A stretch of DNA of 64,000 nucleotides from NCBI GenBank assembly GCA_965649765.1, contig OZ287757.1:12214001-12278000 (forward strand), written 5' to 3'. Origin of the DNA: Bispira polyomma. Its lineage: Eukaryota. The translations under genes were made by a program, and so were the position numbers. Each line of letters begins with the position of its first letter. Within the stretch, counting starts at the first letter, position 1. The notes beneath the pieces were generated by a model. It did no database searches and had not been told where the DNA came from. It saw only the letters and a list, made by a program, of their open reading frames with translations. Below, piece by piece: positions 23,201 to 61,620 of the stretch.

Positions 23201-26200
23201 CACACTTACTGGTAAACCTGGTATGCCGGAATCCCCTTTGTACCCAATTGGTCCATCTTGTCCTGGGATGCCCTAGGGTATTAAAACACATAGCAACAAA
23301 CATTGATTATTTTCACAGAAGAAAATGATATATTGTTTTTAGATATATATAAAGTACCATAGCAACAATAATGTGTAATCTAAAAAGTAGTCACTTCTGA
23401 ACAACTTCAAATCCATTGATATCTGTTTTGAAGTAGGTTGATTTTCAATTTCAGATATATCCTAAATCAGCATGCCTTGAATAAGGTATTGTATTCCAAG
23501 TGTACTCACTTTCAGTTGAACGTTATGAAATTTACTTCTCTAATACCTTCTTATTTACCATTTATTAATTGGCAGAAATTACTGACTAGTAGATATCACA
23601 ATCTATCAATACCCTAACTTCTATTTTCAAAAGATTCACCTGTCCCAATTCAATTTTAACGGTTATAAACATGACATGTTAAAATGATATCAACTAAATT
23701 TTTCAATTGGAAAAAAACCCACCCAATTTTCCTTAAGGAACAACAGTAGAACCTCTATTATCTGAACATGTTGGGAGAGCAGGATGTTGTTTGGATAAAT
23801 CGGAGGGTTCACAAAATAGAAGAATATCGGAGGATGGAATTGAGTTCATAAAAATTAAACATTCGGATGACAGACGTTTGGATAATCGAGGTTTGTACTG
23901 TATTTAACTGAGCATAAATATAAATCAGGGGCGGTATTTACATAACGGTCTTAGTTCTAACTTAGTCTTAACCCCCCCCCTCCTCCCCCCCCCTCCCCCG
24001 CCATTATGAGAATTGTGTGTAACTTACCTGTATTCCTGGGAATCCGTCTCTTCCTGCCTCACCCTTATGACCTTTGACCCCTGCGCGACCTTCAGCCGCC
24101 TCCCCCTTCTGCCCCTTGAAGCCGTCCAGACCTGGGTTACCTGGGGGGCCTTCGGGGCCGGGAATACCTGGCAGACCGGGCTCACCCTGGGGAAAACAGG
24201 GAAAAACAAATAATTAGGGATTGCCTGGCAGACAAGGCTCACCCTGGCGGAAAACAGAGAAAAACAAATAATTAGGGATTGCCTGATAGTTTATGCCTCC
24301 AGAGGGAGCCGAGACTGAACAATTGGTTGACAAGTGGAAGAACCCAGGCTGGGGGTGTAAACTGTAAAGTCAACTAAGACCTTAATATAGGTGATATCAA
24401 ACTATTTACCTTCTGCACACAGTTACATTGCATTGGAATCAGATATTGAAAAATCTACATTCAAGAGGCAAAAATCTGTTGCATAAGAGGCGATATCAGC
24501 CTATAAACCTACACACATTTTTGAAGCCCTTCTTGCATCTTAAGTGATATATGAGGGCATTTTGGATTTATTTTAGACAGTAAAAGGCAACCACCCATTG
24601 ATCTACAGCCTGCTGGATATTCATAGTGAGCTCATACACGATAGGTATTAGTGAGGGGGATAGAAATACGAAGGGCTTGGAGCAGGTCTAGGCCTTATAC
24701 TGCTATGTGTAATGGGAAACAAATACATTATATGTCTGTATTTGAGAATTAACCGGTGGCCGTATTCACTAAGAGACTGAGCGAAGACTTAGGCTTAAAT
24801 CTAACACAAAAGTATACTAGATTTAAGCCTAAGACTTGGCTACATCTGTTAGTGAATTACGGGCCCTGGTAAACTGTATAAAGAGGAAAATACATTGTTT
24901 CTACTATTTTCTATTGTGAGGCACTGAAAAATATATAAAATAATATTTTTGGGGGGTGTCGACTGCTTGCTAACGGACATAGGGTTCTAGGAGTAACAAA
25001 TACCATCGACTACTAAGCTGACAACCTAGTGGTTGAAAGGTTGAAGAAGAACTTGCTCAACTTTAACAAAGGTCTACATTCGTCAAAAGGATGAAGAAAA
25101 ACTTGATCGGAATTAACAAAGGTCTACATTCGTCGAAAAGGTGAAGAAGAACTTGATCGGAATTAACAAAGGTCTACATTTGTCGAAAGGGTGAAGAAGA
25201 ACTTGATCGGAATTAACAGAGGTCTACACTCTAAAGAGGTTTATGGTCGACTACACAACACTACAGGGGACGACATGTCACAGCACAACAGTACTATGTA
25301 CATAAAACACGTCTTGGAACAACAGTACTTTATCCATATAATGTCGTGTAGTCGGCGGTCTATACAGTTCTTTAGTGGGTTTCATTATAACTTACTGATG
25401 TTCCGTTACAGCCATCTAGACCTCTATCTCCACGTGGGCCGGGGTTGCCTTGGTAACCCTAGAAAACAAAAAATTACCATTAGAAACCAGAATCACAGTT
25501 ACCATTAGAAACCAGAATTACAGTTACCATTAGAAACCAGAATCACAGTTACCATTAAAAACCAGAATCACTGTTACCACTAGAAACCACAATCACAGTT
25601 ACCATTAGAAACCAGAATCAGAAATACCATTAGAAACCAGAATCACAGATAACATTAGGAACCAGAATCACAGTTACCAGTAGAAACCAGAATCACAGTT
25701 ACCTGTAGAAACTTTTACTTAAGTACCAAAATATATATAGAGGGAGTTGGCTTGGTAATTTGTGTAAATAGTTTAATCTTGATTTCCTGATTAAAGTAAT
25801 GAGCAGTATAATAATTTCATAAACTAATCCTACAAGAATTATGTACTGACTCAATATCTGAAAATAAAAATAACAATAATGAGTCATTTCCTGCAGAGAC
25901 AGATGTCATTTTCGTTTAGAAGTCTATAAAACCAAATGATAATAAGTTATTACTTATACTTAAGACAACACCCACAATGTCTGGAACTAAAACATAAGAG
26001 AAAGACTATCTTCCTATTTTTAACCACAAAATCCAACCCAACCTTTACGAGATTACAGTGGGGAGACAACGCTTTGTATGATGATAGTACTACATCTATA
26101 TAGGACAGACTCGGTTGATTTCACCATTGTTAATTTGACAAAAGACAAGTAGGAATGAATATATTTTCTGGGTTTTTTTTCTTCTTTTATTTCCCCACAA

Positions 26201-42759: not shown

Positions 42760-42987
42760 TTATAGATAATTCCACATATCTCCAGCCATGCAGGGTGGAT
42801 TCCCCAAACCAACCGATTCTTCGATTTCTCCTCCCTTGTTGGACGGTTGCTCCGGTTGTTCGACCACTGGCTCCTCAGGTACTGGCACTGGGACGTCGGT
42901 TCTGCCGCCATCCGGTTGTGATGGGATCGGTTCATAGTCATAATTGTATTCCTCCACCGCTCCAACGGGCGCAGTCTCCACGGAACC
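42760..42987 (-). CDS. Array last exon: GSVETAPVGAVEEYNYDYEPIPSQPDGG...NKGGEIEES(VGLGNPPCMAGDMWNYL*)
   Basis: tttttcccacatgcag acceptor; TAA at 42760-42762; possible internal donor TCG|GTTGGT at 42814/42813. Confidence 0.8.
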   Translation of the reverse strand, partial: GSVETAPVGAVEEYNYDYEPIPSQPDGGRTDVPVPVPEEPVVEQPEQPSNKGGEIEESVGLGNPPCMAGDMWNYL

Positions 42988-45900
42988 CTGCATGTGGGAA
43001 AAATGGTGTACACTGAACAGATGTGTAGTAACCAAACAGAGATAACATATCGTATTGAGAGAAGTTATTGATGTTGAATATGTAGGTTACAAGAAATCGA
43101 TCAGAATACATTTACATTTAAAGCCCCTAAACGATTGGGATGGCTTGAATTTTTTTTTAATTTAGCGTATTTGTAATGATGGCAGGCAGTGTGTGAAATT
43201 CACTGTGGCCCAGCGCCACCGCTTAATTGAAAAAGCCACTTCTTTTCAAATTCCGGTGGCCCGTTTGGCCACCATATTTCCGGGGCTTTGACTTTTTTTA
43301 CTACACACGCTACAGTAAACTTGTGATACCAGATTGTTCCATTTGCTTCGGCACGCATGCGCAGATGAAATTTATTGTTGAATAAAAGGAAGATTTTATA
43401 TATTCTTAAGTAGTCATATATGTGATCTTTATATATTCTAATTAAACGCATATTTTACTAACTTCATCTATTATTGCCCAGTGCTCTCACTGCTAACCAG
43501 TGTTTCACAGTTAAATCAACCCCTCTTGCCCACTCATTCGAAACAAATAAGAGCGGCTGGTAAATTTTCAGCCCATTTTTTTGAAGTAACACAATATATC
43601 TTTTATTATGTATTAAAAAAATTTGTTTTAAGTTGTATTCTGAAATAAAATTTATAGCTTAATTTTTTTAAGTATTGGGCAACCTGATTGTAATCCAAGC
43701 CACCACACTTTTTCCGCGAAGTTCACATACTAATGACAGGGTACTCATACACCCCCCTCCCCACACACCCTCTCCAAGGATCTGTACACACCCTCACCTT
43801 CACCACTCTGTATCTAGAATACTCATACATACCCCTCCTTCCCCATGGATCTTTATCCCCCTTCACCTTCTCCACTCTGTATCCAGAGAGTACTCATACA
43901 TCCCCCTCCCCTTCCCCATAGATCTGTATCCCCCCTCACCTTCACCACTCCATATCCAGTGTACGTATACACTCCAGGTCCCTCCGCTGTCGCCTCTCCA
44001 GACGTCACCTCTCCAGATTCCACCTCTCCATCAAACTCTCCCCCTGAGAAGACTGGCTCCCTGTTTATGTCTGTCACTGTGGTGGATCCAGACTCCCCAG
44101 ATCCGTACACTTCAGTAGAGCCAGAGGCATCAAATCCACGGTCTCCAGAAATGGAGAATCCTGAGCCTGATCCTGAGACATCAAATCCACTGCCGCCACT
44201 CTGGGAAAGTTAAACGATGATATAGCTATGAATATAGACGATAGTCTTATTTTGACAAACAAGTTCTTATTTGTTGTTAAAATGGACTTCTACAATGAAG
44301 AAAACCTTTCAAAATACAACAAAATTAAATGTGCTGAAATATATCAATTTGAATACAATATACTCACTGGGTAGACAAAGTATGTGTAATCCCCTGATCC
44401 AGACTCCCATCCACTGCCGGAATCCTGGAGAGAGAAACAAACAACACATTACTTGACATGTTTATTAGATTCAATAAGAGCTTCTCCATAAAATGTTTAT
44501 TGTTTGACAGTAATTGTACTTGGGAGTATCATAACTCACATATTAACTTGCCTGCCAGTATTGATCAATGTGATGAAATGTGTTCCAATCAAATCAAATA
44601 TTTAGAAAAGTTTGGGAAAGTATTAAAGATCTCAGAATACTTACCACCCCTTCATAGGGTCCACCAATAACAACCTCTTCTCCTTCATCCCCTCCTTCAG
44701 GAGTTACCTGGAATGTTAACAGACACAGCATATATAGTATTCCATTGTATTTTGTCTTTTTAGCGTGCCGTCTTGATGCAAGGCATCGACTGAATTGCAG
44801 AATTTCCCGAGAGAGACATTATTTTGAATTATAAAAGTAAGTAAGGAAAATATTTGCTGTTATATATTTAAAGTGAACTGTCTACCTGTCTACCCTCTAC
44901 TAAATATACACCTAATTAACATATTCATTACCTAATTAACATAAATTATATTATTGTTTATTCATATTTGATATCACTACATCCAAGATGGCGTCCCTCC
45001 AGGGAAATTCTGCAATCCTGCCGAGGCATCTTCCAAAGTGCAACAACATAATTAATTGACCAATCGAGAAGTCCAACGAAACATAGCCAAAGTCATAAGG
45101 ACGGATGTGAAGTGTACAGGGAAGCAACAACAGAGTCAGTTAACCAATAGAGACGTTCAAAAACATAGCCAAGATCGTAAGGAAGAATCTAAATGTGGCT
45201 GTGTGTGGGAAGGGGACCAAGTGGAGTAAGCAAGTTTGAAGAGATGGGTTTCAAGTATGTTTCTGTACCTAGATAGTGTTTCAGGTGATGCTAACTCAAA
45301 AGGGAGACCATTTCATAACATAGGGGCAGCAGTAGAGAAAGCTCTCCATCCAGCCTTCTTGGTGGGTCTCACAGCCTTCTTGGTGGGTCTTACAGCCTTC
45401 TTGGTGGGTCTTAAAGCCTGCTTGGTTGGTCTTACAGAAAGTAAAGTCTTAGCTTCAAATTCATTGGTCTCTCACCAATGTGGGTTCGAATTTGGTTTGA
45501 TCCTTCATATGGGAAAGTTTGTCAGGTACTTTTCAGAGTTCGATGGTATACACAGTGGCTTTAGCACTGGTTTCTTCCACCAATGAATCTGGCCGTCGTG
45601 ATATGACCTAAGGCGGTTATGAAAAGCAACGTAAAACCCAACTAAATTCCAATTAAAATTTTTAGAAGCATTACATATTTAATTCTTGGTCCAAAACAAT
45701 AAGTTTATTAAAATTTATATTTAAACTTTTTTTCAAAACCTTGAAAAGTAACAATCATTCTAAACTATAAATCTGTCTGTTTGATTTACAACTGTGGTAA
45801 CAAAAGAAATCAAACATTTGCAAAAAAGAAATGAATATTTGGATTAGAGAAGTTCATATGATGGAGTTTTGTAATCTACTCACCACTTCTGGGTAGGTCA

Positions 45901-48900
45901 CCACTCCTTTCTCACTAATGATCACATCAGCCTGTAAAATAAACAAATGAAGAACTCAGAGCTACAGGAGAAACCGTGTTAGGTCGAATCTAGAGCTATA
46001 ACAAGTTGTTCTACTAAAGAAAAATAATAAAATTTTTGTGGTGTCCATTGCTTGCCATCAGACATGGCTTCTGGGGAGTAACAAATGCTACTAGTCGACA
46101 ACCTAAGGGTCAAGGGGTCGAATGGGTGGGCGATATTTTCTCAACAGAATTCTACTTAAAAGGGGTTCAAGTGTACACTAATTGACAATACAGATGTCTA
46201 TTTGTTTTGTGTACATAAATATGCATTAACCAGAATTATAATCTGACTGGTTAGTGTAAATGAACTAATTACTAAGGTAGAACCTGTATTATCCGACCCT
46301 CTATTATCCAACCTTCTATTATCCGAATAATTGATTATATCGACCCATTTGGACTAGCCCAAACTTATTTATTGCTATGTTTTTATACTAAAATGCCACT
46401 TCTATTTTACAGACCTTTTATTATCCAAACAAATTGTCACTCTCCCAAGATGTCCATATAAGAGAGGTTCTACTGTACATATAAACAGAGGCCGGAACTA
46501 CTTTTGTGACTCACCCGACCATCCCCTCCTTCTGTAAATTCTGGGGCCGTTTCACCCTTCTCTCCAGTTACTACATTCACCTGAAAATATAGTGCCGTCA
46601 CTTGTTGAACTTTTGTGGTACAATTTTTTTGAATATTTTAAACAAATTAACCAAACAAACCCCTATACTCAACCTATAATAAATCCCCCATTTTTACACG
46701 GATATAATTTGTTAATAGACAGACCGACATAAAACTCATATAAACTTCATATTTTAACCCTTTCAATTCCAAAAGAAAACTATTGCCCGGAAACTGAATG
46801 GAAATATTTCGGTAATAGATTACAGATAGCTGGAGTCACTGAAAGACACCCCACAAGACTATACTTCCAACAATTACAAATTAACTCACGTATAATTTTT
46901 TTTAAACAGGGAATTCTACAATGAAAAATATAATAAAATGAGTGCTAGTCGACAACCTAAGGGTTGAAAGGATTCAAATCCACCGCTTTGCAAACTAGCT
47001 TCACAAAACTGCACCTTCCAGTAATATATAAACAATTACATAATAATAACACATAAACCAATTATCAGTCTCTTAAAGGTTTTGGGAAAAAAACGGGATA
47101 TTTAATCCATTTTTTCAGCAGTTATGGTACTATATAACGGCACTATATAAGATGTTTTGTTCACTTACTGTTTCATCACCTCCTTCAGTGTATTCCGGAG
47201 CCGTTTCTCCCTTTTCATTTGAAGGCACAAACACCTGAAGATAAGAGTCAAACAGACGATATAACCTTTCACCTACTAACTGTAGTATTACCACGATAAA
47301 TATCTAGTTTCATACTCTCTTGTCAGCAATTTGTTAGTCCTAGAACTTATATCTATTACTTTATTTTTCTTCAATTCCTCTCTATAAGAAATTGTTAGTA
47401 CAGGCGACGTCCATGTTTAAAAAATTATATGCGAGACTGTTATTGAATGCCATAAGTAGTCTGAATTCATCTGTAACTTATTGCTAAAAATATTTTGTTT
47501 GTCAATCCATGAAATACTTACTTCTCCCCACACATTATATTGTTGTAAATCGATGAATTACTTAAGTGTCACACCAATTAGTTACTATCCTTACTAAAAA
47601 ATAATTTTCTTTGTCAATCCATGAAATACTTACTTCTCCCCCTACAATTCCTGTGTACTGGGGACCTACTGGGCCTTTCTCCTCAACATTCAGCTGCAAC
47701 AAAAAAAAAAACAACAACACAAAACTATTATACTGTACAATTGCTATGTGCAATTTAATATCTTACTAAATAAAGAAAACATTCAAAGGTTATATATTTA
47801 ATTCTCTCTTAAAATTTTATGGTATTACAGCATAAAACTTCTATTATCTGAACTTTCTGTTATCCCAGTACACGATTGTCATGATCTTTTGCTTATCACT
47901 ATTTCCCAAAATTCATATTTTCAAATTGTCTTTCCTAATGTTTTAGTAAACCTTCTATTATCCAAACAGAATCAAAGCTAGGTGTGTTGTTGAGATAACC
48001 AAGGTTCTCCTGTCACTGATGCGTTCAATAGCATCATAAATGCCTGTATTGTTACCCGCTCTGTCAACCTTCTAGTATCCCTTACATCGGTGTATTGGCT
48101 CCCCAAACTAATTAAATACCTCTTGTGGGTTTTTTTTATCAAGTCTGAGGTTGTTTTCATTCTGAAAAGGGTGCCGCTATCACTGTGTGAATTACTAGCC
48201 CTGACATTTTGGCTGTATCTTTGCCCATGTATAATTAACCTCATGTGACATTGTAAAATCCTTTATTATCACTCACTCTATTTATAAAACCTCCTATTAT
48301 CACTCACTCTGTGTATAAAACCTTTTATTATCACTCACTCTATGTCCAAAAACCTTCTATATTATCACTCACCCCTGCATTGCCCCCCTGGGAATATCCT
48401 TGTGCTTGGGCAGATTTCTCTTGTGATTGACGATACTACAACACATAAAAACAGAATACGCTACAAAAATCATAGATTAATTCACACTTTCAATAATCTA
48501 CCATCACATGAAACACAAACAATACAATCAAATTTGTGTTTAAACGCAAAACAAAGTAAAAACACTTCTGTTATCCGAATTAATCATGTCTAAATATTCA
48601 GTTTAATACACTCTTTGCCCCTTTAACGATTTTCCTATTGTTTATTTACTGAAGTACTTATTCTATTTTGTTAATTGACAGTTTATATCCACACAACATT
48701 GGTTCTACTAGATTAACTAATATTCATGTAATTTCCTATTGTGATTAAATTTTTTTGAATAAGAATAACTATAAATTCTTATATATCCTAACATATTGGG
48801 TGTACATTGATTCAACTTGTAATAAAAAGGATAGAATTATGTAAATTATATTGCATAAACAGGACATCTGCCAAGTTATCGTTGTTTCAATAATAAAGGT

Positions 48901-51900
48901 GTCATATTTTATATTGTGTACTTACCAGTTCAGCTTCCCGTGCAGACGTGTACTGTTGCTGAAACAAGAAATATATCACATTAATATGAGAATAGTGGCA
49001 AGGAAAAATCTCCAAAGAACTACAATAATTGTTTATACAAAATCCCCAGGCGTAAATAATACCATTTCTTAGACTAACAGACAGGCCCATTAGCAGCCAG
49101 GTACCCATGCATACACCGGGGTAGAGAGAGGGACAACTGTTCTGTGTGAAGTACCTTGTCCAAGAGTGTACAATCTCTAGGCCTGCAGGCGAGGATCGAA
49201 CCTGGGACCCTCTAGGATTCAAACTTAAACACTCTAGCCTTGGAGACTAAGTGGTTTTAACAAAAGCCAAAGAAGTGGGCGTTTATTTGAGAGGTTTTTT
49301 TTTTATATACATATCTACACTGCTGTGTGAAAGCCACCTAGCAATATCAATAAACAAACACTTAGAAATCATCTCTTTCTGAAAGTGCTTTTCACTTGTA
49401 ACCTGTACATTACTGTGACTTTATGTTTTATATACATCTTTTCTTTGATGTTTAACTCCCGATTTTGTAAAACTCCCAAACTTTCAAGAAAAAACCTCCT
49501 GCATCCGACATCAAAAGCAAGACATTATTTTTTAGGTCTCTGTGTACCGTATTTTCTATAATAAAGGTCCCCTTCTCTAATTATAGCCCCCCCCCCCTCC
49601 CCCCCCCACCATCTCTAAACATATGTTTAGGTCCATTAAATGCTAATATTTCTGCAGGTACTACATTAAAATACCACTGGAAATCACTACATCACTCTTC
49701 CAGGCAATGTGGAACATGTTTTAAATAGTGACTTGTATCCGACATAAGTGTACGATAATGTAGGTCAGCCTGTAAATTGTATTGATCTATGGCCGAGAAT
49801 CAAACGATTTTGTGGATGGTTTCTATGATTTTCTTAACAATATGTTATACTACCAGATATCAATATCATTTTCTTTAACTTTTTCATGACTAGGAGAAAA
49901 GCACCGGCAGGAACTGATGGAAATTTTTCGGCAACAGATAATAGCAATAGTCATTAAAACAAACACCACAGACTACTTTGGGGGTGGGGGGGACGGGAAA
50001 AATATTGCCATTAACAAAAATCTTCTTACTAAAAAAATTTAAAAAAAATTATAGCCTAAATTATAGAAAACCCTGACGCCCCAGGGGTGTTCATTACACA
50101 AAGTACAGTATTCAGTATGTACTGACCCTGGCCTTCTCTTCAGACTGCCTCCTCTCCAGCTCATAGCGCTCACGTTCTCTCTGGAAAGTTTTAGAGGAAA
50201 AGAAACGTTTTAAATAAACACCCAAGACTTGACAACAATTTTTCAATTTGTAAATTGCATTATGGTCTTTTTGTTAACAGATTTTATTCCTTTATATTTA
50301 CTCTAATAATAGTTAAAAATAAATTATTTAATGCAAACAAATATCAAGTCCCCAATGTCTGATTTCATAATTCAGACGTTTGCGTAATAGAGATTTGATT
50401 GTATTTACTGTTTTTCTTCTGAGAATTATTGTCCATGCTACTATTACACCTGACTCTAAATGTATCATTTGTAAACACCGTAAATGAACTCAAGTTACAT
50501 TTTTTCTCCTTATCAGTAAGATATTAATCTTTAATAACACATATATACATATATGAGCTACCATTGACACTAACATCATGAATGGCAAAAATATACAGGC
50601 ACTTTTTACTGTTTGGAAAAAAACATTGAAAAGAACAAAACTAAATATATAGAAAGACAAAAAAAAATGTCAAGGGATTTTGAAAGTGATCCAATCATTC
50701 CAGAAAGCAAAAAAATGTTATTCAGCCAGTTTAGTATATATCTCACAGCTGTCACTCAGTAGAGTGCATACTTTTCCTAACACGATAGATATTACCTAAA
50801 CATGAAATAATCTTAAAAACATTCTAGAATCCACATTTCCATCCAGACCTGCCTCATAACGTTTGATGGATTCACTTCTTGAATGGAGCTTCCCATCATC
50901 CCTATGTTTTTGGGGGTTGTTGACTAATGAAATACATTCTATCAGTAGTTTTGGAAAGATGACAACCAAACAAACAAACCAACGAACAGGAAGACAGAAA
51001 ACATAATTTCCTCATTTGGTGGCGGTTTTATAAATATACACCACACTACAATTCCTTACCAATCCATGCAAATTTCTTCGTGCATATTCCATCATTCGTC
51101 TCTGCAAGGCGCGAATACAGTAAAAATACAAAGCAAGGTTGTGTATAATAATACAGACATAAGGTGTGGGAAAGGCAAGCTGGAAGCCAAAAAAAAAAAA
51201 AATAAATATTTTTTTAAATATGAAAGGTCCTGTCTCTCTTGAAAAGAAATGCAAATAAATTGATAAGAATTATACATCAAAGATTACCAATTTTTCAAAA
51301 CATCTGATATTTATTGATACAAATATTATATACATACTGAAAAGCCATACAATACATTACGTTTACAATACACATAGTTTATTATCAAATACGATAAGAA
51401 CAAAAAAGCAAAATTAAAAATAGTGCAAGATAATCAATTAAATGTGTAAGTTAGTTAGGTTTTATTTAAAAGCAAAAATAGTTCAGAAAAACACAAAGTT
51501 GAAACATCTGTTTATTCAAGGGTAAATCATCATTCCGTATTTTATGTATTTTTAAAATTTCCAGAAAAATATAATATATTTCGGGGAGAAAAATTAGAAA
51601 TAGTTTTAAATGTTGCAGATGCATGATGACGGATTTCTACGGCAGGCGACACTTACCCTGTATTCATAGTCATCCCGTCCTGGCTGTATCTATAGTAATA
51701 ACGAATAAACAAAAACAAAGGATGAGTAATTCAATACATTCAATGTTACATTATTCAATATTGACCAAAATTTAGGAAACCTAAAAATATCCCACCATTC
51801 CCCTTTTGACCCAAAGAGAAAACTATCACCAGGAACTGAAAGAAATGTTTGGGGATAATAGATTAAAAATAGCTGGTGTAACTAAAACAAACATTCAAGA

Positions 51901-54900
51901 GCCTCGCATATAATTATTTATATAAGGAAATCTGCTGTAGAGTAACAAATCTAAAATTGGCCACTGTATCTGAAATTGGCCACCTACAAAATGTTCTGTT
52001 TTTTGTGGAATTGTGGGTAATATTTGCTAAAGTCGAGATTTTTGTGACTATTTTGCCTTACTTACCCAAATTCCATTTATATTTTCGCCAGTTTTTAATT
52101 TATTCAGCCTAAATTTTAGGGGTGGCCAATTTCAGATACAGTGGCCAATTTCAGATACAATGGCCAATTTTAAATTCCTTACTCTACTAATGAGTCCCTT
52201 TTTCAAGGAACTGAAAGGAAAATAAAATACTATTTTTGGGGTGTGTCAGCTGCTCGTCAATGACAGATATAGCCTGTGGGAGTAAGAAATGCCATCAGCT
52301 GCTAGTGTTGACAAATCAGAGGTCGAAAAAGTTAAAATTGCACCCTATTTATTTTGTTTTTTTGGGGCTAGTGGTTTCTCTTAAGAAGTAATTCAGCTTG
52401 AGTTACCTTCAAGTCCAACTTCATAAGTTAAAAATACCCACCAACACATTTATATGACCAAAATTGTTTGACAAAACACACTACCACTTGCTGACATTTC
52501 ATACTATATATAAATACCTACCCTATCATCACGTCCCTGTGCATATTCAGGATTAGGACCTTTTTCATCCGATGCTCTGTACCTCTGGAAAGAGAAAACA
52601 ACACAGATATAAACATTTATACACACAAACCTTGTATAGTGTCTAAACTTCTGTTATCTAAATGGTTGGAATTGATGAGACACAACAGAGTGTGTTTGGA
52701 TAACAGGGATTCTGTTATCTGTGTCTATGTGTTGATATCATGTATATATTTTTGTGGTGGTTTTTTTTTTTGTATTTATACTAACAAAACAAACACCAGA
52801 TTGACTGACAAACACTAAAAAATATCAACAAAAGAATATTGACACAAAGGAATTATTTCTAGCTAAAAATAAAATATTTATTTTTTTTCCGTGACTTTAG
52901 TTAAAAAAAAAACTTAACACAAAAGGAAAAACCATTCTTATGGGATGTAAAATTAAGAACATATTGATATTTTTAAAAGAAAAAAAAAAAGATTCTTTTT
53001 ACAAAAGACTTCGGTGTTAAATTTCTATTACTGCACGTCAAATTTCTCATAGAAGAATTGGATATCGGGATGTGGTGGTGAGGTTTAGATGGGGACTTCA
53101 GACAATATACAGAGTGCAATATATAATATTTCTTAATCTATTTTTATTTTCAAGTTTAATAAAAAAGTCTATCAGACAAGTTCTTTTATACTTAAGAGTA
53201 AAGAATATAAAATTTGCCACTTTATCTATAATTTGTCACCACCTACAAAAATGTTGTGTTTTTGGGTGGAATTGAGGGTAATATTTGCTAAAATTGAGAT
53301 ATTTGGGACTTTTTTGTCTTATTTACCTAAATTCCAAGTTACTTTTTCCACCAGTTTTTTTTTTTTATTGATTTAGCTTAAATTTTGGGGGTGGTGAATT
53401 TTAGATGCAGTGGCGAATTTTAGATTCCTTACTCTGTGCATTGTCTGTTATAACCATCTTACGAGATGCACGACTCTCACCTTTCAAAATAGAAGTTTTT
53501 TAAAATAGAAAGATAAGAAAAGACAATTTGGGGTAGAAGGGATTGCTAAAGAATATAGGAACACCAAGCAAAAAAGGCTATTATAATATAACTAGTGTAC
53601 AAGCTTGTCTAAATTAAAGACACATGATACGCTCACAATATTGTTACGTCATCACCTTTTTGGTTCTTACTTTTTAGTGTTGTTTTTTCCCCCCAGACCA
53701 CTAAACAGACCTGGTTCAACTCTCAATGTTGATTTTATGCCAGACAAAACAGACATCCACCAACACACAAACACGGACTGACACGCCGATATTCATGAAA
53801 GCTCAGGGTCTAGAATTGACTGATGGACTTAGCCAAGTTTAAGGCTTACCGTAAATGTAGTATACCTTTGTGCTAGATTTAAGCCTAAAACCTAGCTATG
53901 TCTGTTAGTGAATACAGGCCCAGATAAAAATGGTGCTGCTCAGGTTTTCAATTAACAATTGTTTCTTTTAAGATGTAGTTACAATTTAAGGCAACTAATC
54001 TCCATAGTTTACACATAGCAGGAGAGTGTTTGTTTTTTTCGGTTGATTAAAGTTCCCCAACGCACAATACAGATATTACTAGTTTTCCTATTGGTTATTC
54101 TTGTTTTACAATGCATTTGTTGATTATAGGGACACTCTTGTTGTAATAAATTTATTTTTTACAACTGACAATGTTTTTTACAAGTGGTGAATTGTCCAGA
54201 CAAATTGGGGTGACTATTTAATGTGTTAGGGTGTAGTAGTTACTCACCCTGACATCCTCCCTGCCCCGAGCATACTGTCTGTCAGGTCCTTTCTCCTGGG
54301 ACTGATGATAACGCTACAAACATATAGACAAGGCTGAATTTTTTTTACTTTGGATATTAAACGTCCACTCTAGTACATGTTATATTGGGACGGGTAGTTT
54401 GAAACACTGGAGGAAACACTGCATACAGTTGATCAATGTTCTGCACTAAAACCAGCGGTCCACAGTAAGGAACTACCACCTTTCCCACATAGGCATCGAC
54501 GGAATTCGAACTCACGCCGCCCAGAGGTGAGAGACCAGTGATTGTGAAGCACAATGCTTGCTAACCACTAGGCCACCGCGGCCTCTAGACAAGGCTGATA
54601 ATTGGTTCATCTTCTACATACTACTACTGGTCAGCCAGTGAATTTCACCACCTAAAATAAAATCTTTAAATTTGACGATGGGTACCCTACTTTTTCCGGT
54701 TTGTGGGCATTCCAACCGTATTTTTAAGGTTTCTGTGGTTTAGCAACAACAATTTTTAAGATAGACTCCTAGGGCAGGTGGAGTTGATGGTTTAAAATAT
54801 ACTGAAATAAATATAATGAAAAATGTGGCCATTTCTATGCTAAAAGTTCATGTTATGGCGGAAAACGATTTTAAAACAGTTATTATAGTTTTGTATGAAG

Positions 54901-57900
54901 AAAACGAAATGACTGCATTATCCTCAGAATTAAAATAGGATACCTCAAAGTATGAACCTAAAATTTTTAGCACAAATAGCTGAAAATGTTGTCGCCATCC
55001 CCCAAAAAACAGAGAAGTACCATTATCGAGTATCCAAAAGTTAGTAAATCTTCGACTTACCCTGATATCCTCCCTTCCAGTAGCGTATTCTCTGTTGGGC
55101 CCTTTCTCCTGTGACTGGGCATATCTCTGATCCTCCCTGCCTGTGGCATACTGAGGCCCCTTCTCTTCTGAAGGTCGGACGTTTATCTGAAAAATACAAG
55201 GAGGACAACTCTATTATAAGAACACCTTGGGAGAATTAACATCTGTTCGTGTAACAGAATGCTCGTCACAAAAACAGTGACAGAGGAAGTTTTAGTATTA
55301 AAACAATTTAGAGTAAAAGTAAAAATAATTTAATAACTCATCAAATACATCTGACTATCTGACAGTTAATGAGAAAAAGAGCAAGGAGTTTGTTCAGATA
55401 ATAGAAGTTTCATAAAATACAAGAGTTACATTTGACATTGGAAATCTTTTTCAATGAATCAAATATTTAAATGATAAAAGTTTGGGTAATTATTAGTCAA
55501 TAGACAAACAGACAGACCGAGAGTTTCAGTCAAATACCCACCCTATCGTTTCTGCCAGTGGCAAACCTCGGGTCTGGGCCTTTTTCATCAGAACGGGCAA
55601 AGTTCAACTAAAATGTGGAACAAAAAAACATTTATAAAACTGAAAAAACACACACAAATATCACCCTGTGGCATTTTCTTACCACCAGAAGCAGTGAATA
55701 CCCCCCCCCCCCCCCGCCAAAAAATATTACCGGTATGTAATTTTTCTTCAATTCCTGACAAAGAAAATGCAAAATGCAGCAGTAATTCCCTGTTTAAAAC
55801 ATTATACGCGTGGCTGTTATAGAGTACTGAAATTAGTCTGTGGTTTATTTTTTTAAGTGACACCAGCTATCTCTAATCTATTACCCGAAAAATTTCCTTC
55901 AGTCAAATACCCACCCTATCGTTTCTGCCAGTGGCAAACCTCGGGTCTGGGCCTTTTTCATCAGAACGGGCAAAGTTCAACTAAAATGTGAAACAAAAAA
56001 AACATTTATAAAACTGAAAAAACACACACAAATATCACCCCCTGGCATTTTCTTACCACCAGAAGCAGTGAATACCCCCCCCCCCCAAAAAAAAATATTA
56101 CCGGTATGTAATTTTTCTTCAATTCCTGACCAAGAAAATGCAAATTGCAGCAGTAATTCCCTGTTTAAAACATTATACGCGTGGCTGTTATAGAATACTG
56201 AAATTAGTCTGTGGTTTATTTTTTTAAGTGACACCAGCTATCTCTAATCTATTACCCGAAAAATTTCCTTCAGTCAAATACCCACCCTATCGTTTCTGCC
56301 AGTGGCAAACCTCGGATCTGGGCCTTTTTCATCAGAACGAGCAAAGTTCACCTGAAAATTGAAAGAAAAAACCCCATGTAAAACAAAATATAGCAATGCA
56401 GCCAAAAAGACTGCAAAAAGGTAATTCCTGCATCTACCTCTTCCACCATTGACCTTTGAAAAAATATTTTTGCCCAATCAAATTGCTCAAGACAAAAAAT
56501 TTAAGACGAAGAATCTTTGACAATACCAGCTATGTATTATTTAAATGCTTTAGTTTACATCTTATAATATTCTTTAGTAACTGACTATAGCAGTTCTGTA
56601 CACTCAGAAACTTGCTTTTGTGTAAGAATATCAAGAAACTTGGTTCTACTGCGATTTCGACCGTGGCTCTTGCAGATCTTGACAGACAGAGAGTCTCAGT
56701 AAAACACTTACCCTATCATTTCTGCCAGTGGCAAACCTTGGATCTGGGCCTTTTTCATCGGAACGGGCAAAGTTCAACTAAAAATTAAAAGAAAATACAA
56801 AATATAACAATCTAGCCAGTAGCCATAAAGACTGCAAAAAAAAGTAATTCCAACATTCTTCCACACCCTATAATATTCTTTACTAACCGACCATATCAGT
56901 GCGAGACCTAGTGTATATACATCCACTACTCACCCTGTCATCTCTACCGGTGGCAAATCTTGGATCGGGTCCCTTCTCATCGGAGGGACGAAAGTTCAAC
57001 TGTAAAAAAATATGTGAAATAAGTTGTTGGTGAAAATTGACAGTTGTAGTCAGTAAAGCTGTGTAGTCCCTAAGCTGTAACAAATAATAATAAGATTTAA
57101 AAGTGGTGCCCCCAATATCTGAACTTATTACACGAACGTATTACAGGTGTAGAATTGTTAGAGGACGCGACAACCATAGCGAACAGTAACTGTAAATATA
57201 AAGATTTTATTTATAAAACAAGTAATCTGACCCGTTTTCAATGCAAAGTTTGTATTAAAATGAAATATAGTGTCATAGATACTTTATATTTTACAGATTA
57301 CTTGTTAAATGTAACAAATTTTACATTTTAAGTTACTGTCCGCGATAGCTGTCGTGTCGGCTAAGCTGTCCAACCGTGTATACAAAATATTTGATGATGC
57401 TAATTGATATTTAATAATTTTGTTTCCTACATAATTCATTTTTGGCAATGTAATATGGGTTATTAAGGGTTAATTGTAATTAGATTTTTAATCAGTACGT
57501 ATAGATGTACCTTCATCTGACATTTAGAGCGCTAATTAACCCTTTCCTGACTGTAACAGTCTACTGCATCAGTTACTGTCATTCCTCTAACTGAAGAGAG
57601 AGGCTTTGAGGATGACACCATTCTTGCTCAAGGATGTTATCCCACCAATGAAACTAGTGGCTGGTACTGGGAATAGAACCCAGGACCTTCTGATCATCAG
57701 ACCGGCTCCCTACCTGACCACTAGGCCACGAGGAACCACAAGAAGTTGGTTAACAACATCCAAAGTAACTTACCCTGTCATTTCTACCCTCAGCAAATCT
57801 GGGATCTGGGCCTTTTTCTTCAGATGGACGGAAATTTAGCTGAAAATACAGACACAAAATAACAGTCATCTGTTATGTAGACTCAGCTAGTGAATGCAAA

Positions 57901-60900
57901 CTCTCAAACATTTGGACATAAATTAAACACAGTATAAAAGTTTAAACATTTGTTAGAAGCAAGGGGCACAATACATAATTCTAACAGCACACGGCTGTCT
58001 CAGCGACTCTAATTAGGTGAACGATGCGGTAAAATTCACCATATACACATATAGACTAAATATGTCTGTAGTGTACTTGATGCCCAGTAAATAATATAGT
58101 TTGTTCAATAATGTGACTTTTGCAGTAAATACAGCCAGAATCAGATAATTATGTTAAGTTCTCATATGAGAATGGGAATAACACTTTTTAAAGCTATGAT
58201 ATACAGTAATTTTGACCACTCTTGGGAGTATCGAAACACTCAGGCTTCACCTTTGTGCTACTACGCCTCCAATCGTGGTAAAACAAGAATTGTTCAGTGA
58301 ATAATAATAACTTTATATTCTGTGGTTTAAATAAGATTTTCTCAATGTTCCAGATGCCAGATATTATATTTCAGAAACGAATAAGTGTCCGCAAATGGGG
58401 GCAATGTCAGCAGCCCATGAATATCAAGTTTGGTACAGTAAACTAGACAATTCATATAAATAACAAAGGCTGAACTTACTTGGAATTCTTTAATTGTCTA
58501 AATTTTGACATAAAATTTTTTTTCGTCATAAACATTCACGCACAGACAAATACTTTATAAACCTTCTATTATCCAAACAAAATTGTATTACTATCAAAGA
58601 GTTCAGATGAAGAAGTGGGAAAATTTACTCACTCGGTCGTTTCTGCCTGAGGCAAATCTGGGGTCGGGACCCTTTTCCTCTGATGGACGGAAGTTCAACT
58701 AAAAAGGTAAAAACAAAAAACACCTGTTAACATATATGACCTTAGATGCTGAAAGTGACATAGAAAAATTCCGAACAAATATAGACTCATTCCACATTTT
58801 GATCACGTAAGCGGAAAAAATATACAAAATGTATTTTTAACATTTGAATACATTTTTTTATTTCCTATTTTCTTAATTTGTGTTGGAGATAAGTGAAGTT
58901 AATTTACATTTTGAAATGCCAACACTGCTGTTACATGACCAAGTGTAAAACAGATATTTTGGTCCATAAAAGAAAGTGATCGATAACAGAAAGTTTGACA
59001 ATAGTACTGATTCTTGTAACTGCAGTAATTTTATAACACTACCCTTTGCACTAAGATTTGGCCTATGTTTTTTACACAATAAACAGATCTTTACCCCGTC
59101 CGATCTCCCTGTAGCAAATCTGGGGTCAGGACCCTTTTCATCAGATGGACGGAAATTGAGCTGAAAAAATATAGGGGCAAAATATCAGTTGATTTGTAGA
59201 TGTTAAAGTTTAATTTATAACAAAATAATGCAACAAATATATTCCAATATAGAATCAAATCTAGTCCCTTTTTCTAGGTGCTAGATCCTCCCTCTGGGAG
59301 AATTGAAAGCATCAACCAAAAAGATTAACATTCAGCGCAGGGAAAAGGAGGCCTGGGTTGGCAGGGTCGGGTTATTACAATATCTGAACACAATGTATCT
59401 CTCCAAAATTTTATATTATAGCTTCCACTGAATTCCTTTAAAATCAAACATTACACACCTGATCTTCCCTGCCACGTGTATATTGAGTGTTGGGTCCTTT
59501 CTCTGAGCCAATCTGGAAGATATCACACAAAAACAGCTCCAGATTATTGTATTGTACATTTTTAACGCACACTATAATGTACAGACACATAATAAGTATT
59601 GTGTTAGCTTACCAAAGAAATTGTCTACTTATGATCTTGCCTGAGTTTTTATATTTGTCAAGTATATTAACAATCAATGGTTTACTATAGATTTACAGTG
59701 GAACCACTTTTAAGTTAAAACCTCAAGGAGCCAGAAGAAATACTTCTACTTAATCAGGATTTCCACTTTTTGGAGCAGATCCAGATAAAAGGGCGGATTA
59801 AAAAAAAAATATTTTCAATGTTTTTGCACTGTGGCTCCTTGGCAGATGTATGCAGTCTAGCAAGTACTATTTCATAATATCTAAGATTATAATAAAGATT
59901 ATAATTACCAATTCATCAGGTTGTCCTCTGGCATATTCTATAGTATGTCTCTGTAAAGGATTACAATACAACTATTACTGCTTTGTTGGACCCCGAGAAC
60001 TGAAACCTTAAGGGCCCAGGGGAAAATACCTCTACTTGAGTACGATAGTCACTTGATAGCTTTTGTGGAAAACTATAAAGTTTTTTGGTATCATTAAAAA
60101 AAAATGTTTTCACTACTATTTCGATGTACAAGAAATTTCAGCTTTTGATTACATATCTTTACTTCTGACAATATGGGTTTCTGCATCATCTATTGTTGTG
60201 GAAAATTTAGCTAATAAGACTACTGAAAAGAGAGTAATTTCAGGTTGAGTGTTTATGTGTCCTACATTTTCATTGGCCAAAAATAATACATAAGCCTGTC
60301 AATTAACTCACCCTGGTGTCAATATCTTGTCTTCTTGTCTCTGCATAGTTGATCTGTAGAATGACAGCAGGATATTGAGACATTAACAACAAATTGACAT
60401 TAATTACTTACACAAATACAATACCACCGATGGAGAATAATTCCACTATACTGAGGGATAAAACACTTTGACACACTTTGATGACGTCATAAATGACATT
60501 TTGCAACATCTGATTACATTATAAATGAAAAAATATATTTTTCTTAGTGTCAAATGCAGTATACATCACATAGAAGTTATTCCTGTGTGCTGAGGGAGCT
60601 ACACAATATTTTATACTGTTGATTGCTGGCCGACAGACATGGCACGGGCGAATACAATTGTCCGTCGACTTCTAGCTGATAGACTAGGTCGTCAAGAGGT
60701 TTAAACCTCCTTTTTCTTTAGGCAAGTACTTGGTGCCAACTGGTGGTTTTAGATTGACCAAAATTAGTATTGTATGTAATTATCTACGAAATGCACAAAC
60801 ATCACTTACCCCCTTCTCATTTTGTGCTCCAACCTGTGGGCGAAAGAAAGCATAACATAATGTACACAATAAATATATATATATAGATTGTATGTTTAAT

Positions 60901-61620
60901 TTGGTTCTTATGTCATGGAAAATCAGTACCATTTATATATAAGAACCCTTATTTTTGCACTATAAACTACAGACCTATAGAACACGTATTTGACATTATT
61001 AGGAGGACGTGTAATTTAAACCAACTGTCCATAGAGGTGAGATGCAAGTGATAATACAGCAAACACTTCTAACCAATAAGCACTGTATATGCCACTACCT
61101 GTACAAAGTTTTATGCCCAAACTCCTAAAATATCTAAAATAGTGCCGACTTGACACATTTTATCCCCAGTTGACAAAACTCTACATAATGACCATCCTTA
61201 TTAAACTTACTTGCGTCGATTCAGCACATGCTTATCCCCCGATGATGAAGAAATATGTAAATGGCCCACAGACAGAACTAAATTTGGGTACGATTGATTT
61301 TTGGGATTTTTTAAATTATCTATGAAGGAACCAACAGTATCAGAATATATTCAGATATAACGCCGAGAAACAACAGAGGCCACATATTAGGCAAATAACA
61401 GCTGACCTAGATTTTATAAACACAGTTTCACTCCCCCAAATTTCATTTTCCTATTAATTCATACTAAAATGCCTTTTCTGTTTTTTCCAACATTCTACTA
61501 TTATCCATACAAAATTTTGCTCTCCTCTCGGATAATTGACTTTCCAGTGTATTTTACAGGAGTTCAAATAATCGAGTGTATCCTTACCTGGCTATATCCT
61601 TGAGGGTAAAGGTAACCAAG
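42760..61620 (-). CDS. Array of 29 phase-0 exons, about 680 aa, non-collagenous EKG(P)-repeat plus Ser-Gly/acidic protein; probably the N-terminal extension or an alternative product of the collagen IV gene
   Basis: All exons have AG/GT ends, lengths divisible by 3, no in-frame stops and recurring peptide motifs; same strand and phase as the 7S exon. Linkage to the collagen is inferred. Confidence 0.8.
43940..44200 (-). CDS. Array exon (261 nt), Ser-Gly/acidic: SGGSGFDVSGSGSGFSISGDRG...GPGVYTYTGYGVVK
   Basis: actttcccag acceptor, gtgagg donor, open phase-0 frame. Confidence 0.85.
44368..44424 (-). CDS. Array exon: DSGSGWESGSGDYTYFVYP
   Basis: ttctctctccag acceptor, gtgagt donor, 57 nt. Confidence 0.85.
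44645..44707 (-). CDS. Array exon: VTPEGGDEGEEVVIGGPYEGV
   Basis: cattccag acceptor, gtaagt donor, 63 nt. Confidence 0.82.
45350..45436. repeat. 21-bp tandem repeat, 4 copies
   Basis: cagccttcttggtgggtctta. Confidence 0.85.
45455..45645 (+). mobile_element. Diverged tRNA-derived SINE fragment
   Basis: ggtctctcacc..gggttcgaat..tgggaaag, related to the 41718 SINE head. Confidence 0.55.
45884..45931 (-). CDS. Array exon: ADVIISEKGVVTYPEV
   Basis: attttacag acceptor, gtgagt donor, 48 nt. Confidence 0.8.
46515..46580 (-). CDS. Array exon: VNVVTGEKGETAPEFTEGGDGR
   Basis: attttcag acceptor, gtgagt donor, 66 nt; paralogous to 47169-47234. Confidence 0.87.
47169..47234 (-). CDS. Array exon: VFVPSNEKGETAPEYTEGGDET
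   Basis: atcttcag acceptor, gtaagt donor, 66 nt. Confidence 0.87.
47634..47693 (-). CDS. Array exon: LNVEEKGPVGPQYTGIVGGE
   Basis: tttttgttgcag acceptor, gtaagt donor, 60 nt. Confidence 0.87.
48373..48435 (-). CDS. Array exon: YRQSQEKSAQAQGYSQGGNAG
   Basis: gtgttgtag acceptor, gtgagt donor, 63 nt. Confidence 0.82.
48926..48958 (-). CDS. Array exon: QQYTSAREAEL
   Basis: cttgtttcag acceptor, gtaagt donor, 33 nt. Confidence 0.75.
49085..49245 (-). mobile_element. tRNA-derived SINE with Deu/Nin-like central domain
   Basis: B box ggttcgatcc, then cttggacaaggtactt...ccccggtgtatgcatgggtacc. Confidence 0.6.
50127..50180 (-). CDS. Array exon: RERERYELERRQSEEKAR
   Basis: actttccag acceptor, gtcagt donor, 54 nt. 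Confidence 0.78.
51060..51101 (-). CDS. Array exon: RRMMEYARRNLHGL
   Basis: ccttgcag acceptor, gtaagg donor, 42 nt; resembles 59909-59950 (R...EYAR...L). Confidence 0.62.
51657..51689 (-). CDS. Array exon: IQPGRDDYEYR
   Basis: ttactatag acceptor (alternative in-frame cag 6 nt inside), gtaagt donor. Confidence 0.72.
51938..52186. mobile_element. About 250-bp MITE nested in a piggyBac-like fragment
   Basis: TA-flanked gagtaa...ttactc ends interrupt the tctgctgta|c site that is intact in other copies (near 12165 and 41047). Confidence 0.75.
52522..52584 (-). CDS. Array exon: RYRASDEKGPNPEYAQGRDDR
   Basis: tctctttccag acceptor, gtaggt donor, 63 nt. Confidence 0.88.
53195..53435. mobile_element. 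About 240-bp MITE copy
   Basis: agagtaaagaat...attccttactct. Confidence 0.75.
54248..54313 (-). CDS. Array exon: RYHQSQEKGPDRQYARGREDVR
   Basis: tgtttgtag acceptor, gtgagt donor, 66 nt. Confidence 0.87.
54338..54585 (-). mobile_element. Full-length tRNA-derived SINE with 13-bp TSD
   Basis: Highly similar to 41718-41968; TSD tagacaaggctga at 54325-54337 and 54586-54598; A-rich tail. Confidence 0.92.
55061..55186 (-). CDS. Array exon with two units: INVRPSEEKGPQYATGREDQRYAQSQEKGPNREYATGREDIR
   Basis: atttttcag acceptor, gtaagt donor, 126 nt. Confidence 0.9.
55542..55607 (-). CDS. 66-nt repeat exon: LNFARSDEKGPDPRFATGRNDR
   Basis: cattttag acceptor, gtgggt donor. Confidence 0.88.
55915..55980 (-). 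CDS. 66-nt repeat exon: LNFARSDEKGPDPRFATGRNDR
   Basis: Identical to 55542-55607. Confidence 0.88.
56286..56351 (-). CDS. 66-nt repeat exon: VNFARSDEKGPDPRFATGRNDR
   Basis: aattttcag acceptor, gtgggt donor. Confidence 0.88.
56712..56777 (-). CDS. 66-nt repeat exon: LNFARSDEKGPDPRFATGRNDR
   Basis: atttttag acceptor, gtaagt donor; synonymous differences from its neighbours. Confidence 0.9.
56934..56999 (-). CDS. 66-nt repeat exon: LNFRPSDEKGPDPRFATGRDDR
   Basis: tttttttacag acceptor, gtgagt donor. Confidence 0.9.
57620..57735 (-). mobile_element. tRNA-derived SINE head fragment
   Basis: gtggcctagtggtcagg A box, gggttctattccc B-box-like; relative near 31520-31620. Confidence 0.6.
57774..57839 (-). 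CDS. 66-nt repeat exon: LNFRPSEEKGPDPRFAEGRNDR
   Basis: tattttcag acceptor, gtaagt donor. Confidence 0.9.
58633..58698 (-). CDS. 66-nt repeat exon: LNFRPSEEKGPDPRFASGRNDR
   Basis: cctttttag acceptor, gtgagt donor. Confidence 0.9.
59095..59160 (-). CDS. 66-nt repeat exon: LNFRPSDEKGPDPRFATGRSDG
   Basis: attttttcag acceptor, gtaaag donor. Confidence 0.9.
59459..59512 (-). CDS. Array exon: IGSEKGPNTQYTRGREDQ
   Basis: atcttccag acceptor, gtgtgt donor, 54 nt. Confidence 0.83.
59909..59950 (-). CDS. Array exon: RHTIEYARGQPDEL
   Basis: cctttacag acceptor, gtaatt donor, 42 nt. Confidence 0.75.
60312..60353 (-). CDS. Array exon: INYAETRRQDIDTR
   Basis: attctacag acceptor, gtgagt donor, 42 nt. Confidence 0.75.
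60810..60833 (-). CDS. Array microexon: VGAQNEKG
   Basis: ctttctttcgcccacag acceptor, gtaagt donor, 24 nt, EKG motif. Confidence 0.75.
61588..61620 (-). CDS. Array exon: LGYLYPQGYSQ
   Basis: tttatttacag acceptor, gtaagg donor, 33 nt; QGYSQ recurs in 48373-48435. Confidence 0.72.

Follow-up and report, generated by a model that had tools for sequence, protein, structure and literature searches.

Introduction

The telopeptide/K-G-H cross-link code is held to be a property of fibrillar collagens, and collagen IV, which 7S and NC1 bonds hold together, to be structurally conservative. Across Metazoa the lysine donors of fibrillar chains read X-K-G/A-P and lie in non-helical sequence with no other lysine, and their acceptors are helical K-G-H-R (PMC5120351); X-K-G, X-K-A and X-K-S are also LH2 targets (PMC7852207). 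For collagen IV, LOXL2 has been reported to cross-link 7S lysines (PMC7619536), and protostomes have lysyl oxidases only of the SRCR-type LOXL2/3/4 class, with a proposed action on collagen IV (PMC4448552). Here we describe a stretch of 64,000 nucleotides (nt) from Bispira polyomma (assembly GCA_965649765.1, contig OZ287757.1, positions 12,214,001 to 12,278,000), hereafter the window, the minus strand of which carries a string of small lysine-bearing repeat exons in an alpha2-type collagen IV gene. On balance, the sequences favour a lysyl-oxidase donor/acceptor system that has moved into collagen IV in a multivalent, splice-tunable form and would mostly cross-link its own network.

Results

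Repeat exons and their lysines

Positions without a prefix are on the window scale, and G000:Cn marks genome coordinates beyond or including the window. Exons were searched singly or as alignments. The repeat exons are present and coding from 45884 to 60833, with one further exon at 61588-61620, and lie in the gene as follows (all on the minus strand).

61588-61620 (-): first confident head exon in the window, 11 amino acids (aa)
60810-60833 (-): 8-aa exon with N-E-K-G at its end (site 1)
59909-60353 (-): two spacer exons without lysine (60312-60353, 59909-59950)
59459-59512 (-): repeat exon, S-E-K-G-P
59095-59160 (-): EKGPDP exon 1
58633-58698 (-): EKGPDP exon 2
57774-57839 (-): EKGPDP exon 3
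56934-56999 (-): EKGPDP exon 4
56712-56777 (-): EKGPDP exon 5
55542-56351 (-): EKGPDP exons 6-8 (56286-56351, 55915-55980, 55542-55607), 371-bp tandem array
55061-55186 (-): double-repeat exon, EKGP twice
52522-54313 (-): repeat exons 54248-54313 (Q-E-K-G-P) and 52522-52584 (D-E-K-G-P)
48926-51689 (-): four Arg/Glu-rich exons (51657-51689, 51060-51101, 50127-50180 with E-K-A, 48926-48958)
45884-48435 (-): five divergent repeat exons (48373-48435 with E-K-S, 47634-47693, 47169-47234, 46515-46580, 45884-45931)
43940-44707 (-): acidic Ser-Gly/Tyr-rich exons (44645-44707, 44368-44424, 43940-44200), 16 Ser-Gly pairs
42814-42987 (-): last head exon, acidic and Pro-rich, weak phase-0 GTTGGT donor
36690-36776 (-): collagen IV 7S-start exon, C-x-x-C..C-x-C and first Gly-X-Y
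5311-28812 (-): interrupted Gly-X-Y exons of an alpha2-type chain, continuing below the window to NC1
24062-24081 (-): helical K-G-H-K, candidate acceptor, in exon 24028-24186
16713-16886 (-): candidate alternative exon B, K-G-H twice (KGHR, KGHK)

The 25 exons from 61620 to 45884 encode 481 aa with 20 lysines, every one of them preceded by glutamate (18 EKG, one EKA and one EKS). EKGPDP is carried by eight 66-nt exons, and its DNA pattern was matched eight times against 0.00 expected. Exon translation and pattern search thus agree with the original prediction, which had counted eight EKGPDP and 18 EKG and had described the motif lysine as nearly the only one, as it is in all 20 cases; its statement that exons mostly carry one motif each is right, the exceptions being 55061-55186, with two, and six exons with none. 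As arginine is three times commoner (68 residues) and lysine occurs solely at the motif, lysine is excluded from the rest of the 481 aa. Shuffling within exons (20,000 times) gave on average 0.5 E-K-type sites and never more than four, against the 20 found.

All 29 head exons, that is, these 25 and the four acidic ones that follow, are bounded by AG..GT, are in phase 0 and contain no stops. The eight EKGPDP copies differ, as had been said of them, largely by synonymous changes: the dN/dS-type check, run on the pooled copies, gave a synonymous difference (pS) of 0.72 against a nonsynonymous one (pN) of 0.086, i.e., purifying selection. They do not represent eight independent origins, since exons 6-8 sit in a recent tandem array. 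The array is no assembly artefact, as DNA contigs from two samples span the stretch.

The head has no cysteine, and its repeat is confined to a single locus in the whole genome. Thirteen of the window repeats terminate in [F/Y]-x-x-G-R with acidic residues next. The eight core repeats contain no glutamine, although it flanks several sites (Q-S-Q-E-K, E-K-A-Q-Q-P-Q). A single-sequence fold of the head, which is weak evidence, showed no secondary structure (pTM 0.13). Neither the repeat nor the acidic block had a match in Pfam, PDB or ESM Atlas, and a scan of JGI metagenomes found no relative; the matches P0001, P0003 and P0006 were rejected as unrelated repeat proteins.

Conservation in other animals

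A repeat profile search detected homologues in two other animal-derived assemblies, and a word-index search using the cross-species alignment added no further contigs. The orthologous contig L040 has the same order of blocks as the window (repeats, an Arg/Glu-rich segment, repeats again and an acidic Ser-Gly/Tyr block), and its introns cannot be aligned with those of the window. It contains single-base frameshifts near 1156 and 2081 that look like assembly indels; we kept the pieces apart and excluded two lysines from an off-frame piece. Among the 20 lysines counted, 17 follow glutamate and three serine, and the next residue is alanine (11), glycine (seven), serine (one) or aspartate (one), so that 19 are K-[G/A/S] and none is EKGPDP. 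Over the three species, 41 of 42 lysines are K-[G/A/S], 39 of 42 follow glutamate, and there is not one swap of lysine to arginine despite the abundance of arginine. Other positions of the repeat are conserved as well, namely serine at K-3, an aromatic residue at K-6 and another between K+4 and K+7, followed by G-x-x-D. The G-R after the repeats is not (13 cases in the window against three in the orthologue, which retains the G and the D).

The check on orthologues that the original prediction proposed was therefore passed by the lysine itself, but its central image, a mimic of vertebrate COL2A1 EKGPDP, does not hold as such: with none of the 20 orthologous sites reading EKGPDP, the exact hexamer is the variant of one lineage, multiplied by exon duplication. 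What these comparisons show to be conserved is the telopeptide pattern shared across Metazoa, X-K-G/A(-P), with no other lysine around it. K-G-P occurs at 14 of 20 sites in the window and at five of 20 in the orthologue. EKGPDP is the C-telopeptide of COL2A1 (PMC2716783, PMC12900657) and DEKAGG its N-telopeptide (PMC12900657), and both are found among the repeats of the window and orthologue species.

Ser-Gly pairs in acidic context number 16 in the window and nine in the orthologue. The acidic clusters of Ser-Gly and tyrosine (window 43940-44707, L040:6181-7719) share E-Y-N-Y-x-x-D/E, and their composition suggests glycosaminoglycan attachment and tyrosine sulfation. The Arg/Glu-rich segment is equally placed in both species (window 48926-51689, L040:2694-4900), where it splits the repeat array, and is possibly a single charged helix or a coiled coil. 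In the mitogenome of a relative (L042, COI 80% identical), one strand carries cox1-3 and nad3 and the opposite one the remaining protein genes; genes on both strands fit sabellid annelids. The mitochondrial code of the window's animal is code 5.

The collagen IV gene around the head

After the repeats there follow, on the same strand, the four acidic Ser-Gly/Tyr/Pro exons (44707-42814), the 7S-start exon, the Gly-X-Y exons and NC1. The tandem C4 (NC1) domain is matched by PF01413 at G000:C10:12195073-12197833, with PDB NC1 matches too. Its best score is against alpha2(IV), and its identity to the alpha2-like chains of other animals is 69-81%. The head-bearing gene is a true collagen IV. Its plus-strand neighbour is a second collagen IV gene, alpha1-like by NC1, and the two ATGs are 1.18 kb apart, head to head, which is the usual arrangement of the COL4A1|2 pair (PMC12141075). 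Signal peptides were called by eye and by hydropathy. That of the head gene is split and lies beyond the window (G000:C10:12296112-12296102 and 12288929-12288881); its 20-aa leader consists of M-K-L-W and a hydrophobic 16-aa exon with V-L-A at the end, which supports secretion, on which the original prediction depends. The partner has its signal peptide at 12297292-12297369, and its leader runs directly to the Cys exon, with only a few residues where the head would sit.

We found no convincing candidate for a signal-peptide exon between the acidic block and 7S. With the leader beyond the window and no convincing internal one, the head exons fall inside the collagen IV transcription unit, before 7S. 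The 29 exons amount to 666 aa in phase 0 throughout (up to three extra micro-exons are possible upstream), and phase 0 also holds for the donor of the signal peptide and for the acceptor of 7S. No conserved non-coding sequence was seen among the aligned output when the orthologue tail was compared with the intron at 42813-36777, so an internal promoter is unsupported.

Several observations on related genes may be added. The alpha1-like partner has, after its NC1 (L001:1489-1896), an in-frame Gly-rich C-terminal tail of ca. 40 aa. A second head-to-head collagen IV pair lies at G000:C10:35.99-36.10 Mb and a fifth, single gene with a divergent NC1 at C5:64.17 Mb; the two paralogous NC1 compared are 48-54% identical to that of the head-bearing chain. 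At G000:C13:10.02-10.16 Mb (-) and 10.22-10.31 Mb (+) lie two divergent Gly-X-Y genes of very large size, in each of which the long collagen exons number in the dozens. They have no COLFI or C4 match and are candidate giant annelid cuticle-type collagens.

Candidate donor sites and lysyl oxidases

The repeats fit the description of fibrillar donors on both counts, the motif, which has K-S in vertebrate variants, and the lysine-free, non-helical context. A telopeptide proper has a single site beside the uninterrupted helix of a COLFI-bearing chain and is exposed by removal of a propeptide; here we have ca. 20 tandem sites in a network collagen with NC1. As far as sequence can tell, then, the repeats would work like telopeptides and, lacking a COLFI chain and being a tandem array, are not telopeptides. 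Lysyl-oxidase chemistry at the repeat lysines is likely. The predicted string of about 20 lysyl-oxidase sites survives in that the context agrees with the telopeptide pattern (PMC5120351) and with the LH2 set (PMC7852207), but not in the form of the COL2A1 hexamer. The genome contains about eight lysyl oxidases, one at C5:27.87 Mb and about seven in tandem at G000:C11:13.57-13.78 Mb. Two fibrillar loci were detected, on C9 and on C13; the chain on C9 (L027:389-590, G000:C9:51.73 Mb), clade B-like, has no lysine in the C-telopeptide region before its R-E-K-R furin-type site, and K-[G/A]-P-D-P is too common genome-wide to pinpoint the telopeptide of the species itself.

Helical K-G-H sites

The interrupted helix of the head-bearing gene gave ca. 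500 scored Gly-X-Y triplets. In the scored runs of the collagen IV pair, lysine precedes all 12 G-H-x triplets (background 0.147, binomial p 1e-10). There are six K-G-H per chain, and nine of the 12 are K-G-H-K/R. By splicing, the alpha2 chain could have five to seven such sites, four of the K-G-H-K/R lying below the window; alpha1 has six. G-H-x occurs four times in the 1,292 triplets of six alpha2-like control loci, which include a near-complete Trichuris chain; one of the four is K-G-H, and none is K-G-H-K/R. Counted among K-G sites, K-G-H makes up 12 of 140 in the pair and one of 199 in the controls (Fisher p 1.5e-4). Genome-wide, the pattern G-x-K-G-H-x-G (with K, R, Q, N, S or H after the histidine) had 66 matches, nine of them in the pair; the three paralogous collagen IV loci had none, nor had the giant collagen genes on C13. 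Each fibrillar gene has one match (the C13 one is K-G-H-K), and the other matches in the genome are at background level.

The helix exons 20537-20725, 16713-16886 and 15190-15378 (all on the minus strand) are homologous to one another, in phase 0 and weak in their donors, and are probably mutually exclusive. K-G-H is present, twice, in exon B in the middle and in neither of the other two.

Discussion

A possible mechanism

We picture the head as an optional, disordered and non-helical N-terminal extension of ca. 670 aa on the alpha2-type chain of the head-to-head alpha1/alpha2 pair, so that one alpha2 chain per protomer would trail a flexible tail from the 7S end. Its repeat, with the consensus F-x-x-S-[D/E]-E-K-[G/A/S]-x(0-2)-P-[Q/E/R]-[F/Y]-x-x-G-x-x-D, would act as the telopeptide of a fibrillar collagen does: its one lysine, perhaps hydroxylated beforehand, would be turned into an aldehyde in the extracellular space by an SRCR-type lysyl oxidase, and that aldehyde would condense with the lysine or hydroxylysine of a helical K-G-H-(K/R) on neighbouring helices. 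Donors would number about 20 against 17-19 acceptors per alpha1-alpha1-alpha2 trimer, a likeness that may be a coincidence. Splicing of the cassette exons, all in phase 0, could vary how many donors there are, and splicing of alternative exon B how many acceptors; the Ser-Gly block may bear glycosaminoglycan and serve as a spacer. The tail would most likely lash adjacent collagen IV helices side to side, although the K-G-H of fibrillar chains could also be reached. The earlier proposal of a staple to fibrils stands to the extent that fibrillar K-G-H make fibrils possible partners; the likeliest acceptors are nevertheless the helical K-G-H of the pair itself, because the nearest partners of such a tail are other collagen IV molecules. 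That the entire fibrillar code has been taken over in multivalent form by a basement-membrane collagen IV protomer (ca. 20 donors and 17-19 acceptors, adjustable by splicing) and with it a third, lateral covalent linkage beside the 7S and NC1 bonds is a real possibility, though we would stop short of calling it probable.

Probable splicing of the head and alternative explanations

From genomic sequence we infer that the head is probably spliced onto 7S, giving a long chain, in view of its position, the uniform phase and the canonical phase-0 donor that closes the last head exon of the orthologue; short and stand-alone isoforms may exist besides. Several facts weigh against this and against the wider proposal. 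In the three runs that hold the stretch, all of them DNA contigs, no splicing is seen; at 1.9 bits the donor at 42814 is weaker than any of the 37 trusted ones; read-through past it meets a stop near 42760, with AATAAA ca. 40 nt further; and L040 ends 2.9 kb past its last head exon with no 7S exon within. On the acceptor side, the spacing of K-G-H, measured on a rough exon model, shows no D-period and no clear register between donors and acceptors or between chains. The six control loci are partial, mostly of unknown taxon, and may include no annelid, and K-G-H could be a general annelid trait unconnected with the head. K-G-H-R binds heparan sulfate as well (PMC12995845). As to the donors, mammalian LOX is reported not to oxidise free D-E-K peptides (PMC5120351, citing Nagan and Kagan), and the reaction may thus need docking on a helix; D-E-K accounts for 18 of the 42 sites.

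The weak donor, the in-frame stop and the AATAAA would all suit a head that is never joined, in which a shared promoter and signal peptide serve one transcript that skips to 7S, giving ordinary collagen IV, and another that stops within 42987-42720; the product of the latter would be secreted on its own as a multivalent cross-linker, with many lysines and a proteoglycan-like end. Even without the head, the signal peptide is indeed in a phase compatible with the 7S exon. We consider this rather unlikely, given that the last head exon of the orthologue has a strong GTAAGT donor and a read-through tail unrelated to that of the window, and that GTTGGT apparently also serves as the donor of exon C, a further candidate for alternative splicing in this gene. 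Both of its isoforms could, besides, coexist with the long chain. The reading of the repeats as lysyl-hydroxylase/glycosylation sites, or as a motif for non-covalent docking, with a head that is a glycosylated spacer or binding tail and forms no covalent cross-link, is not likely either. Membership of X-K-G/A/S in the LH2 target set, the conserved aromatics at K-6 and K+4 to K+7, which suit docking, and the adjoining Ser-Gly block speak for it, but the exclusion of other lysines and the matched K-G-H are a cross-link signature, and docking belongs to the telopeptide mechanism and hence is no alternative to it.

Cross-linking by some other chemistry, i.e., transglutaminase isopeptides to nearby glutamine or quinone/peroxidase tanning, would equally require lysine over arginine; glutamine stands beside several sites, and transglutaminases cross-link collagens too (PMC5120351). 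It would leave K+1 as G/A/S and the helical enrichment of K-G-H unexplained, and the eight core repeats offer no glutamine; we hold it to be unlikely. The G-R and acidic residues ending 13 window repeats might recall a prohormone-like array, cut at basic residues and amidated to give short bioactive peptides. With only three such ends in the orthologue the Gly-basic signals are not conserved, there are no dibasic flanks, and the array is located inside a collagen IV gene, so we find that idea very improbable. Least credible of all is a neutral low-complexity expansion or a set of non-coding repeats: three copies were recently duplicated in tandem, but the excess of pS over pN refutes it, and the splice sites are intact and the repeats conserved in a species with unalignable introns.

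Comparison with known systems

If the lysyl-oxidase system proposed here is real, the cross-link code is portable and usable for the lateral cross-linking of a network collagen, which could make the sheet both tough and tunable or bridge it covalently to fibrils. The ca. 40 variant sites form a natural series with which substrate recognition by SRCR-type lysyl oxidases could be studied, and collagen materials that are multivalent and enzyme-cured might be modelled on the head. In the literature searched, most subscription journals aside, we found no family, structure or paper on such a head.

The gene resembles collagen IV alpha2 (the COL4A2 / let-2 / Viking class) in its Cys-rich 7S start, interrupted helix, NC1 that is best matched by alpha2 and divergent shared promoter. 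It departs from an ordinary alpha2 chain by ca. 670 non-helical residues encoded between signal peptide and 7S and by the repeated helical K-G-H. With the clade A fibrillar collagens it shares X-K-G/A-P donors in lysine-free non-helical sequence and helical K-G-H-R/K acceptors (PMC5120351), but these have a single donor at either end and two acceptors in each chain, placed by D-stagger, whereas the head gene has ca. 20 tandem donors at one end, five to seven acceptors per chain, no COLFI and no clear period, in a network collagen. Like the SURF modules of sea urchin fibrillar collagens, optional tandem N-terminal exons within a large first intron (PMC2852846), the head is made of optional tandem N-terminal exon modules of an invertebrate collagen; SURF modules are folded, with four cysteines, and belong to a fibrillar N-propeptide, while the head has no cysteine.

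Two further comparisons concern the disordered array and the Ser-Gly block. Tropoelastin, known only from vertebrates, is a disordered chain with many lysyl-oxidase sites encoded by in-phase, alternatively spliced cassette exons, and by that description the head is similar, having many candidate lysyl-oxidase sites, disorder and in-phase cassettes. The lysines of tropoelastin are paired in KA/KP and form desmosine, and it has no triple helix. The multiplexins XV/XVIII and collagen IX have Ser-Gly glycosaminoglycan sites, as the head gene may, and the chemistry of lysyl oxidase also cross-links collagen IX to fibrils; their terminal domains are different and include no tandem telopeptide array. 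What appears to be new is the combination in a collagen IV of a multivalent telopeptide-like head, itself conserved, with candidate K-G-H acceptors, two independent sequence signals that suggest one chemistry.

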